A stretch of DNA of 64,000 nucleotides from Piromyces finnis finn (GCA_002104945.1 MCFH01000034.1:434001-498000); one strand, 5' to 3'; shown: positions 1,277 to 57,329, numbered from the stretch's first letter. The notes: generated by a model not told the origin, from the letters alone. Program-made: numbers and translations.

Positions 1277-3464
1277 TTATTGAGATAAGATGTTCTTTAA
1301 GTCATCAAGGGATGGCTTAACTGGGTTACAGGCGGTACCTTGGTCAGCTAAAGCCTTAGCAGCAATATCGTTAATAGCAGCGTTGAATTCTGGTTCAATG
1401 TCCTTGAATTGAGTTGGAACGTTACCGAGGGCAACAATCTTGTTAACTTGAGCAATTAAATAATCAACCTTAGCATCAACGGATTTGTCGTAGATATCTT
1501 CACCGACAGCAATAGCAATCTTATCAGCTAAAGTAGCATAGGCGTTCTTGGCGGTTTCATCCTTAGCATTGAACTTAATAACCTTTGGAAGAACAATAGC
1601 GTTAGCAACACCTGGGTGAATGTTACTGAAGCGAGAGGAAACAAAGTGAGATAAGGAGTGACTGATACCGAGGAAGGAGTTACCACTAGCCATACCAGCT
1701 AAAGTAGCAGCGTTGTGCATAACAGCACGACCTTCAATATCGTATTCCTTGTCAACAATACTGTTCTTGAAGTTGGAAATGATAGCAACAGCGGCCTTTT
1801 GAGCGTATGGAGCAGTGTAATCGTTACTGTGAACAGAAACAATACTTTCAATAGCCATGGCAAGAGCATTTAAGGAAGAGTTGACAGCAACTTCCTTTGG
1901 CATACCCATGGACATTTCTGGATCAGTAATGGCCATGTTTGGAGTTAAAGTGTAAGTAGAAATTAATTCAATACTACCATTGTCTAAAGTTAAACGAGCA
2001 AATGGAGTAACTTCATCACCAGTACAGGAAGTGGTTGGGATACAGACAAGAGACTTGACAACATCACCACGAATTAAGTTCTTGTGTAAACGTTCACGAA
2101 TTGAATCGAATGGACCAACTAATTGCTATTACAAATGGAATAGGATATATCATTAATAATTAGAATTAGAATTTCGGTGGTAAATTTTATTTTAATATCC
2201 GAATGATAATACTTTTTTTAATTAAACATTATATATAATTTAATACATACTTCAGCAGTAAGTTCTGGGTTTTCGTAGAAAATTCTAACTAACTGTTAAA
2301 ATTTGATAATCACATATCAATATATAAATATATATTAATTATTTTCGCTCCCTTTTATTAACACATAATTTAAAGTTTAAAAATATAGAGTATGCATACC
2401 TTAGCATAGTTCATAGCTGTACCACCACCAAGGGCAATGATAACATCTCTATTTTTTTTTTTAAAAAAAAAAAGATAATTTATATTATTTATTTAGAAAA
2501 ATAAATCATTTTTAAACAGCTATTTCATTTATTATTTATATGGGTGTATTTTTGCTTGCTCATTTTTTTTAATATATATCATTATATATCAAAATAGGTA
2601 TATTTATAATATTAAAAAAAACACTTACGGCCTATAATAATAAAATATACAATAATAAAAAATTAATAATCCTGTTATTAAATATTTAAACTATATTATA
2701 ATATTCGAATATTATTTTTTTTTATTGATAATTACTTGAAGATCTTAGCTTCAGCAAGACCATTTTGAAGATCGTTGACGGTTGGGTTCTTAACAACTTG
2801 ATCCTTATTTTTAAAAATGAAAATTTAAAATTTTTATAATATTAATTTTTATTTGTAATTTAAATAAATATAAATTGCTATTAAATTTATTGAAATAAAA
2901 TATAATATATTTACAAAGATAGAACTGTTGTTATTAAATTTAAATATAGAATTTTTTTTTTTTTTTTTTATTTGTTTGTTTTGTTTAATGTTATGATGTG
3001 TATATATCATTGAATTTTATTTCCAGTATTTTTAATATATGTCAAAATTTTGGTTGATATAACAAGGTTTTTATTAGTTTTTGGGAAACAAATATTAATA
3101 AATTATTTATGGATATAATATATATATAAAGAAAATATTAATATATATAATAATAATAATAATAATTGTTAATAAAATGAAGTTCATATATAAAAATTTC
3201 AATATTTCTTTAATAGATGATAATATTTTCATTATTCTATTTTTATTCTACTTTGTATTATCAATAAAATATTTAAACTTACGTAGCGAATCCCTTAGAT
3301 TCGCAAACCTTCTTGACACGGTGACTAACACCAAGCCAAGTTAAGTCACGATCGGTGACAATTAAAGCACGCTTGCAAACATCCTTTAAATCATTTAAAG
3401 CTTCGCTAACAATAGCTCTTTTGAAGTAAACACTTTCTGGAACACGGAACCAAAGCATAGACAT
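1277..3464 (-). CDS. Stand-alone Fe-ADH-family protein matching only the C-terminal alcohol dehydrogenase half of AdhE (400 aa, 7 exons)
   Basis: Exons 3464-3283, 2924-2915, 2803-2736, 2631-2629, 2448-2400, 2292-2251 and 2125-1277, all GT-AG, total 1203 nt and stay in frame. Translation: MSMLWFRVPESVYF...KPDVIIALGGG...IPTTSCTGDEVTPFA...LGISHSLSH...GVANAIVLP, which follows the AdhE ADH domain. Exons are much more GC-rich than their flanks. Confidence 0.9.
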
Positions 3465-54372: not shown

Positions 54373-57329
54373 TTATATTAATTCTTGAGATGGATGATTT
54401 GATGAACCAACATTATTGTCATCTGAAAATAGATCATCATCTTCAACATTAATACCAATTTCATCATCATACATTTCATCAACTTCATCATAATCATCTA
54501 AAAATCCTTCTTCAGCAAAGTAATCAAATCTTTCATTTTCATTACCATTTTCAGCTTGTCTCATGGCTTCAGTAACAGCACTAAAACGTGGTTTTTTAGA
54601 TTTCATATAGAAAAATATACCAGCAGCACCACAAACAGATAATAAAATTAAACCAGTGTGACCTTCATCTTGTTCTTCTTCTTGTTCTTCTTCTTTTGGT
54701 GTTTCTTCTTCTGGAGCAGCGTTTTCTTTGGAGGCTTCGTCTCCTTCTTCGAATGGACTAGATGTTTCTAAAGAAGAAGTACTAGTGGAAGTAACATCTT
54801 CTTCCATGGTAGATGATGGTTTTTCTTTTGAGTTTCCACTTCCTATAATCTTTTCTTCTGAGAATGTAGTGGTTTCTTCATCACCATCAGTTTTACTTTC
54901 AGTTTCATTTTCAGTTGAAGAACTAGTAGGTGTTGAGGTGACTAAAGCAGTTCCAGTGGATGTAGTTGAAGACTTTTCTTCATAACTAGTGGTCTTGTTT
55001 TCAGAATCGGAATCATTATCACCATCTTCATTTGTAGCAGTTGGTGAACTAGAAGAAGAAGAGGTACTAGTAGATGAGCCAGTGGATGTAGCTGAAGCAG
55101 TACCAGTGGATGTACTAGTAGATGAACCAGTGGAAGTAGCTGTAGTGCTTTCTTCACTTTCAGTAGTCTTGTTTTCAGAATCGGAATCACTACCATCATC
55201 TTCCTTTTCTCCTTCATTTGTAGCAGTTGGTGAACTAGAAGTAGAAGAAGTGGTACCAGTAGAGGTACCAGTAGAGGTAGCTGAGGCAGTACCAGTGGAA
55301 GTAGATGAACTAGAAGAAGTACCAGTAGAGGTAGCTGAAGAAGTACCAGTGGAAGTAGCTGTAGTGCTTTCTTCACTTTCAGTAGTCTTGTTTTCAGAAT
55401 CGGAATCACTACCATCATCTTCCTTTTCTCCTTCATTTGTAGCAGTTGGTGAACTAGAAGTAGAAGAAGTGGTACCAGTAGAGGTACCAGTAGAGGTAGC
55501 TGAGGCAGTACCAGTAGAAGTAGATGAACTAGAAGAAGTACCAGTAGAGGTAGCTGAAGAAGTACCAGTGGAAGTAGCTGTAGTGCTTTCTTCACTTTCA
55601 GTAGTCTTGTTTTCAGAATCGGAATCACTACCATCATCCTCCTTTTCTTCTTCATTTGTAGCAGTTGGTGAACTAGAAGAAGAAGAAGTGGTACCAGTAG
55701 AGGTACCAGTAGAGGTAGCTGAGGCAGTACCAGTGGAAGTAGATGAACTAGAAGAAGTACCAGTAGAGGTAGCTGAAGAAGTACCAGTGGAAGTAGCTGT
55801 AGTGCTTTCTTCACTTTCAGTAGTCTTGTTTTCAGTATCGGAATCACTACCATCATCTTCCTTTTCTCCTTCATTTGTAGCTTCGGTCTTTGAAGTTTCT
55901 GTGACTTTTTCATCTGATTTACTAGTTGACTTTTCATCAGTGTTGGTTGTTGTAGTAGAATCGAGAGCAGTTTGAGTAACAGTACTATCAGTAGCAGTAA
56001 TTGTAGCATTAGTATTATTCTTACTAGTAGTAATAGTAGCATTTTCAACAGATTTAGTGTTGACTGGATTCTTTTTTGCATCTTCTACGGTAAGAACTGA
56101 AGCACCACTAATACCAATAGCATCAATAATAGCATTGACTTTCTCCTTATCTTCATCCCCTTCCATCTTTAATTTTGACATAAAGGTCCATGTTAATTTT
56201 TTAGAGTTATTTTCTATTATAGAAGCGTAACCATAAGTGACTTCGGCATCCATTACAATATCAGCCATAGTTAATTTATTGTCATTATCAATAGCAAATT
56301 GGAAACCATTTTCTCCATTAAAACTGAAAATAATAGTTTTGTCTTCAACAAACTTTTTTAATTTATTACAAAAAAAAAGGGGGGAAGAGAAAAGTGAAAT
56401 ATATTAATACAATGTTAATTTTTTATTTTTAAAAATGGATATATTTTAACTATTCATTTGATAGTTACTTCATCTGGTTTAACATTTAAAGTAACGGTTG
56501 CTTTAACAGTTTCACCGACTAATTTTTTATCTGTTGTAGTAACATCACCAATACTTAAACTATCTTCATTAATTTTCCAACCCTTACAATCCTTGACCTT
56601 TTTCTTACTATCTTTTTCCAATTCACATTTAATATCTAAAAATGGAGCTGCATTAAATTTTTCATTGGCAAAACTAGTAATACTAGTAATAGAAGGATCA
56701 TCATTAAATAATTGGATTGGAGCTTTATTTAGATAAATAATAAAAATTAATAGTCATTCCATATCATACTTAAAATATAGATATAATTATCTATTATTAA
56801 TAATGTATATACTTCTACTATCCTATTTCTACTTACCACATTCCTCAGTAACTGTTGGAATAAGATTCATGGAACGATCACATACTTCATCTTCTCCTTC
56901 CTTTGGTGGTTCATAGTAATAAATTTTCTTACTATCTTTTAATAAAACTTCATTTTCAACACATTTGGTAATGAAAACTTTAAGAGAATCGTCTCGACAA
57001 CCTTTATTAAATTTAACCCATTAAATTAATTAATAACAACATATAAATAATTAAAAAAAAAAAAAAAACTTTAAAATGCTTGTTTCATTTTATATTCAAA
57101 AAAAAATAAGAAATAATTTTTTATTATTCCTCTCGAGGTTATTTTTCAAAAAAAAAAAAAAAAAAATAACCCCTCGATACTTTTTAAATATATAATATAT
57201 AAAAAAAAAAACTACATTTCAATGCTATAAATTACCTTGAACAATTTGAGTATCTAAAAATCCTCCTAATAATCCAGCCTTTGCCGATACAGCTGATAAA
57301 ATTAGTAATAAATTTGATGAAAACTTCAT
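54373..57329 (-). CDS. Type I membrane protein: signal peptide, Cys-containing N-terminal domain, Ser/Thr-rich mucin-like repeat stalk, one TM helix and acidic cytoplasmic tail; 4 exons
   Basis: MKFSSNLLLILSAVSAKAG signal-like start at 57329, three GT-AG introns joining ORF 54373-56268, TM GLILLSVCGAAGIFFYM followed by KSKK and a D/E-rich tail. Confidence 0.85.
54985..55881 (-). repeat. 219-bp (73-aa) intragenic tandem repeat: three full copies, one shortened copy and one partial copy
   Basis: TGTAGTGCTTTCTTCAC recurs at 55141, 55360, 55579 and 55798. Unit ATNEGEKEDDGSDSDSENKTTESEESTTATSTGT...SPT. Confidence 0.95.

Follow-up and report, generated by a model that had tools for sequence, protein, structure and literature searches.

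The window analysed here, a 64,000-nt stretch of the Piromyces finnis genome (MCFH01000034.1:434001-498000), has a G+C content of about 18%. Its most G+C-rich kilobase (0.42) lies at 54900-56400, where long frames overlap on both strands and the translation is of low complexity and rich in Leu and Glu. The gene described here occupies positions 3464..1277 on the minus strand and consists of seven exons with a total length of 1203 nt (400 codons plus a stop). All of the exon boundaries have AG before and GT after the exon, giving six GT-AG introns. The exons in gene order are as follows.

Exon 1: 3464..3283, minus strand, 182 nt; from the ATG of MSMLWFRVPESVYF to ...GFA plus the first two letters (ac) of a Thr codon; donor gtaagt.
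Exon 2: 2924..2915, minus strand, a 10-nt micro-exon; completes the Thr and continues with Ser-Ile-Phe; flanked by caacag and gtaaat.
Exon 3: 2803..2736, minus strand, 68 nt; DQVVKNPTVNDLQNGLAEAKIF plus the first two letters (aa) of a Lys codon; AG/GT boundaries.
Exon 4: 2631..2629, minus strand, a 3-nt micro-exon, GCC; completes the Lys and starts the Pro of F-K-P-D; flanked by ttatag and gtaagt.
Exon 5: 2448..2400, minus strand, 49 nt; DVIIALGGGTAMNYAK, containing an altered pyrophosphate-binding motif (canonical GGGSxMDxAK).
Exon 6: 2292..2251, minus strand, 42 nt; LVRIFYENPELTAE, the start of the AdhE-specific insertion.
Exon 7: 2125..1277, minus strand, 849 nt including the stop; 282 codons.

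The gene structure was checked against the intron-less coding sequences of two orthologue transcript contigs, L021 and L018, which have about 90% nucleotide identity to the P. finnis gene. Each exon, both micro-exons included, falls without gaps at its cumulative offset on these sequences. Exon 1 is identical to L021 at 165 of 182 nt (cDNA positions 1-182), exon 3 at 63 of 68 (positions 193-260) and exon 7 at 774 of 849. The 10-nt exon 2 is colinear with cDNA positions 183-192 (8/10 nt identical in L021 and 7/10 in L018); both cDNAs read TS(I/V)F here, and the orthologue proteins read TTSIFDQ across this region. The GCC of exon 4 is found at positions 261-263 of both cDNAs, and the Pro that it starts is present in the transcript-derived orthologues, being missing only from a genome-predicted Neocallimastix model (P0018). 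The database model of the P. finnis protein (P0001, 374 amino acids) is 100% identical over exon 7 and skips exons 2 and 3 (26 amino acids). We searched with the P. finnis exons individually; the full-length analyses were made on naturally occurring proteins, P0002 and other orthologues, together with P0001. Because the gene is spliced, a bacterial-style list of open reading frames shows a 219-residue frame only (1277..1936). An earlier, sequence-only reading of this DNA placed the gene at 1277-2448, which covers exons 5-7 only. It gave the start of the protein as MLWFRVP, and the protein does begin MSMLWFRVP, but this start is at 3464 and thus outside that range. Its description of the frame as free of lesions holds after splicing, as the seven-exon structure is intact, but not for the unspliced DNA, in which just the 219 residues are listed.

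The gene encodes an ADH-only protein, lacking the N-terminal acetylating aldehyde dehydrogenase (ALDH) domain that is the defining feature of bifunctional AdhE (NF010378). An in-frame stop lies immediately 5' of the P. finnis ATG (3464), and no ALDH-like frame was found among the open frames of the window within 6 kb upstream of the gene. Eight orthologue contigs from independent samples carry 5' leaders of 29-118 nt (7-13% G+C), with an in-frame stop ahead of MSMLWF (or MYLLWF or MTMLWF) in all eight, and several of the contigs end in poly(A). These contigs are spliced mRNAs encoding an ADH-only protein. The absence of the ALDH half, as claimed in the sequence-only reading, is thus borne out, and the orthologues are transcribed and spliced.

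By its PDB matches, fold and position in the tree, the P. finnis protein is an intact AdhE-type ADH domain. Exon 7 alone matches the Pfam families ADH_Fe_C (PF25137; 103 bits, E = 2e-29) and Fe-ADH (PF00465; 32 bits, E = 9e-8), both above their cut-offs, and exon 1 matches positions 1-52 of the Fe-ADH profile (PF00465), below the cut-off when scored alone; the orthologues carry both domains. The best NCBIfam match is AdhE (NF010378), over profile positions 455-861 only and with 336 bits against a cut-off of 951. The best sequence matches in the PDB are AdhE ADH domains (PDB entry 3zdr with E = 1e-37, followed by 7dag and 6ahc). An AlphaFold2 model of orthologue P0002 (pLDDT 87.7) superposes on E. 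coli AdhE ADH domains with TM scores of 0.91-0.92 and on Fe-ADH structures with scores of 0.86-0.92. Alignment to residues 449-891 of E. coli AdhE shows a common MLW..P start and the AdhE-specific insertion (YE.PE...F..IR.R), in which exon 6 aligns with IMWVMYEHPETHFE; identity to any AdhE is only about 35-37%. The databases name the fungal proteins 'dehydroquinate synthase-like' or 'alcohol dehydrogenase class IV'.

A quick IQ-TREE search placed the fungal sequences in one clade (100% support) inside the AdhE-type group. This group, which includes the AdhE ADH halves and the fungal clade, is set apart from other Fe-ADHs with an SH-aLRT of 95. Within it, the fungal clade, bacterial AdhE and the stand-alone bacterial ADHs of the AdhE type join in a polytomy, so that the fungal gene may be a paralogue of a fungal AdhE or may go back to a separately transferred bacterial ADH-only gene. 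The fungal stem is 1.72 substitutions per site long, while the branches inside the clade do not exceed 0.3. The tree took in 30 bacterial AdhE ADH halves and does not contain AdhE from gut fungi; a codon-biased motif scan of metagenome contigs for gut-fungal AdhE transcripts gave low-GC bacterial contigs only.

The iron site of this domain is degenerate. The Fe-ADH superfamily is characterized by four metal ligands, Asp/His/His/His, two of which are lost in the fungal protein. The minus strand reads NALAMAIE, with Asn at 1870-1868 (AAT) and Met at 1858-1856 (ATG); in E. coli AdhE numbering these are the replacements of Asp653 by Asn and His657 by Met. His723, His727 and His737 are retained. 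The motif SHSLSH lies at 1663-1646, and NIHPG follows at 1624-1610, with its His at 1618-1616. The last ligand had been called ambiguous (IHPG or PHG); its His aligns with His737, and a Pro is inserted just after it. All of the motifs quoted in the sequence-only reading are found at the minus-strand positions given for them, and its central description is supported: the protein is ADH-only and intact, derives from AdhE and is degenerate at the iron site.

The loss is not particular to P. finnis. The Asp and the first His ligand are replaced in all 16 fungal orthologues, which span Piromyces, Anaeromyces and Neocallimastix and also come from transcript assemblies, and the last two His ligands are kept. 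The replacing residues vary: the former Asp column contains Asn in ten sequences, Tyr in four and His in two (92nd percentile of column entropy among the 16), and the former His column contains Met in 13, Asn in two and Thr in one (78th percentile). No compensating Asp or His is visible near the former ligand positions. A set of short proteins on long branches (P0036-P0042) was considered as further degenerate clades and rejected, as these proteins keep all four ligands.

Other parts of the cleft have changed little. Among the 16 orthologues 193 of 400 columns are invariant, and Asp38, GGGTAMNY.K, PTTS(C)TGDEVTPF, MHNAATLAGMASGN, His274, His278 and His288 (orthologue numbering) are invariant or nearly so. 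One of the three remaining His residues corresponds to the His that has been proposed as catalytic in FucO and GraC. Asp38, encoded in exon 1 (GAT, 3353-3351), is invariant; an Asp at this site ('position 81') specifies NAD in the Fe-ADH family (PMC5125639). Three changes have occurred in the cofactor motifs: GGGS to GGGT, MD to MN and SGTGS to SCTGD. The first, in the pyrophosphate loop, is conservative and invariant, and the whole GGGTAMNYAK motif (2429-2400) shows one Ala-to-Ser exchange as its sole variation among the 16 sequences. TTSCTGDE (2035-2012) stands in place of the canonical TTSGTGSE; the deepest orthologue (P0022; SRR25404265/67) has Gly where the others have its Cys. Judged by these columns, the two former ligand positions are relaxed and the remaining cleft is tightly held.

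Nei-Gojobori dN/dS values are 0.12-0.23 among close orthologues, including exon 7 of P. finnis against three of them, and 0.34-0.47 to the deepest orthologue, P0022. By these ratios, all well below 1, the gene is under purifying selection. The idea that the Asp-to-Asn and His-to-Met changes are fixed under such constraint is correct as to the ligand loss, which occurs in all orthologues at dN/dS below 1, but not as to the substituted residues, which are N/Y/H and M/N/T. Synonymous divergence is only 0.27-0.5 among the closer orthologues (L018, L021, L023 and L026 against exon 7), some of which are from different genera; this is consistent with a strong constraint on codon usage, which would inflate the dN/dS values given. 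The codon bias noted earlier is confirmed: AAG accounts for 94% of the Lys codons in the P. finnis gene, compared with 3-47% for the window's other long open frames, and C-ending codons for Phe, Tyr, Asn, His, Asp and Ile make up 53% compared with 9-27%. The bias resembles that of the most biased butanol-dehydrogenase-like gene of P. finnis and is typical of abundant proteins. From this bias and from the recovery of orthologues in many transcript-like assemblies, the gene is apparently highly expressed.

A decaying gene, a sequencing error or a mutation of this one strain would have only the substitutions themselves to recommend it. Loss of the same ligands is seen in 16/16 orthologues from several genera and independent assemblies, dN/dS is 0.12-0.23, the seven-exon structure is intact and the transcripts of orthologues are both spliced and polyadenylated. 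The loss in all orthologues, the dN/dS below 1 and the spliced mRNAs exclude decay confined to this strain as well as an error of sequencing, and the chance that any such explanation applies is negligible. The altered site is a conserved functional shift rather than decay or sequencing error.

A canonical AdhE was sought in the assembly of P. finnis (56.5 Mb, 232 contigs). No AdhE-type ALDH domain was found in it using PF00171, NF010378, the E. coli AdhE protein or a degenerate DNA pattern for FDNG.ICASEQ, and no second AdhE-type ADH was found. The single ALDH-family gene in the assembly (L226, G000:C150:277906-279433) reads as GapN-like, with the motif GQRCTA. Six Fe-ADH loci are present: the AdhE-derived gene and five intron-less genes of the butanol-dehydrogenase/YqhD-like kind with canonical ligands, located as follows.

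L003-L006: G000:C46:672-686 kb, tandem array of four butanol-dehydrogenase/YqhD-like Fe-ADH genes.
L001: G000:C166:370 kb, butanol-dehydrogenase/YqhD-like Fe-ADH gene.

The AAG share differs strongly among these five copies (22-88%). There are reports of ADHE from Piromyces sp. E2 and from Neocallimastix (PMC5125639, PMC10526403); that P. finnis apparently has no AdhE may be genuine or may reflect a gap in the assembly.

These searches bear on the proposal that the protein caps or regulates AdhE filaments, with the ADH-only protein docking on a free ADH-ADH interface. In E. coli AdhE the ADH-ADH contact is made by a Phe670 plug and a pocket of Ile460, Phe462 and Ile712 (PMC6778083). The fungal equivalents are conservative and nearly invariant: Tyr221 (codon at 1819-1817 in exon 7; Phe in one orthologue) for Phe670, Val12 and Phe14 (both in exon 1) for Ile460 and Phe462, and Met263. 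The reports of ADHE in related fungi would also suit such a role. However, these 'interface' residues are found in bacterial stand-alone ADHs as well, and partly in other Fe-ADHs, and so are not specific evidence, and the gene is kept under constraint in a species whose assembly of 56 Mb yields neither an AdhE-type ALDH nor a second AdhE-type ADH. The filament role suggested by the sequence-only reading is therefore not supported for P. finnis, and we regard it as very unlikely. Since there is no detectable AdhE in P. finnis, the protein must have its own function there.

The closest known relatives are the ADH domains of AdhE (cd08178; E. coli 6ahc and 6sci, Geobacillus 3zdr), which give the best match in both sequence and fold. 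The fungal protein shares with them the MLW..P start after the AdhE linker, the AdhE insertion, the NAD-specifying Asp and three His residues. It differs in having no ALDH half, no equivalents of Asp653 and His657, altered cofactor motifs (GGGT, MN and SCTGD) and six spliceosomal introns. Bacterial stand-alone ADHs of the AdhE-type group (P0025-P0031; 411-417 amino acids, starting MQWFKVP) are similarly ADH-only and have the same start point, but have retained all of the ligands, and their GGGSxMDxAK and TTSGTGSE motifs are of the canonical form; one of their genes (locus L227) is bacterial, as it adjoins an EAL-domain gene. We found no description of the ligand loss or of an ADH-only clade in the literature on anaerobic-fungal ADHs, horizontal gene transfer and Fe-ADH pseudoenzymes.

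Weighing what such a protein might do, we tentatively favour an NAD(H) oxidoreductase that works independently of metal and has changed its specificity, a preference short of real confidence, because the His triad is invariant, a pocket of the NAD type is retained and codon usage is strongly biased. The protein would be a free-standing cytosolic derivative of the AdhE ADH half, conserved and expressed across the Neocallimastigomycota, that has given up the canonical Fe2+ centre while its histidine triad and its pocket for NAD(H) are kept. It would still bind NAD(H), and would most likely be an oxidoreductase, metal-independent or differently metallated, whose substrate is not the acetaldehyde/ethanol pair, with carbonyl polarization taken over by the retained His274, His278 and His288. 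No AdhE-type ADH is known to work without a metal. There is a precedent elsewhere in the Fe-ADH superfamily: the maleylacetate reductases (MARs; cd08177) use NAD(H), are active without metal and have the ligand Asp replaced by Asn or Arg (PMC5125639). MARs are another subfamily, however; PDB entry 3hl0 matches with E = 8e-12, a TM score of 0.70 and 18% identity, compared with 1e-37 and 0.92 for AdhE. The fungal protein does not belong to the MAR subfamily, and Asp-to-Asn is the single feature in common. The paper describing the MARs names the Asp substitution only, whereas the fungal protein lacks the first His too (PMC5125639). Two lost ligands here against one in MARs thus weigh on a metal-free mechanism, the three cofactor-motif changes could impair NAD(H) binding, and the very long stem branch would fit a loss of the ancestral activity equally well.

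The main rival to a metal-independent oxidoreductase is a non-catalytic NAD(H)-binding protein, in which the fold and NAD(H) pocket would be kept for binding only, for example as an NADH/NAD+ sensor, a regulator or a scaffold, without hydride transfer. We consider this doubtful but a serious contender. Two of four metal ligands are gone and their positions are drifting, several cofactor-motif residues are altered, and the long stem followed by conservation indicates a change of function. The family offers parallels for the loss of an ADH function. The ADH domain of Clostridium acetobutylicum AdhE1 has lost most of its ADH activity and yet is retained (PMC4845359), although that protein, unlike the fungal one, is bacterial and fused to an active ALDH. 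ErcA (NF041833) is a protein of the Fe-ADH family that NCBIfam names 'alcohol dehydrogenase-like regulatory protein'; the fungal protein is not a member, scoring 171.5 bits against a curated cut-off of 550. A pure scaffold, moreover, would not need the three remaining His residues and the nicotinamide-side motifs, which are invariant, and the extreme codon bias suggests that the protein is abundant, as would be expected of a metabolic enzyme rather than of a sensor. A conventional metal-dependent ADH with a rebuilt site is also conceivable, in which His274 and His288 would be joined by new ligands such as the N/Y/H residue or the Cys and Asp of TTSCTGDE. Two of the His ligands remain, a neighbouring loop has gained a Cys and an Asp in the very lineage that lost an Asp and a His, and Fe-ADHs can work with several different divalent metals (PMC5125639). 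P0022 has Gly in place of this Cys, however, and the former ligand positions vary between genera, which is unexpected for a coordinating residue, and we consider a rebuilt site improbable.

The key enzyme for making ethanol in mixed-acid fermentation is AdhE, whose ADH half is considered to depend strictly on iron. If the fungal protein is active, it would be a natural experiment in metal-free catalysis on an AdhE-type fold; if it is inactive, it would be a clean case of a pseudo-enzyme retained for binding. A larger claim, which we put forward as speculation and think rather unlikely to hold, is that this is a phylum-wide, abundant AdhE-fold protein with a new working mode. It would be either an AdhE-type ADH with metal-free or Cys/Asp-rebuilt hydride transfer, or a dedicated partner that binds NAD(H) and has been kept even in P. 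finnis, which seems to have lost AdhE and every acetylating ALDH; in P. finnis it would then be part of an undescribed redox-balancing or ethanol route. The apparent lack of AdhE and acetylating ALDH in P. finnis raises the question of where acetaldehyde from acetyl-CoA, and ethanol, come from in this fungus. Metabolic models of gut fungi may be counting these genes, given the names under which they are annotated, as ethanol-forming.
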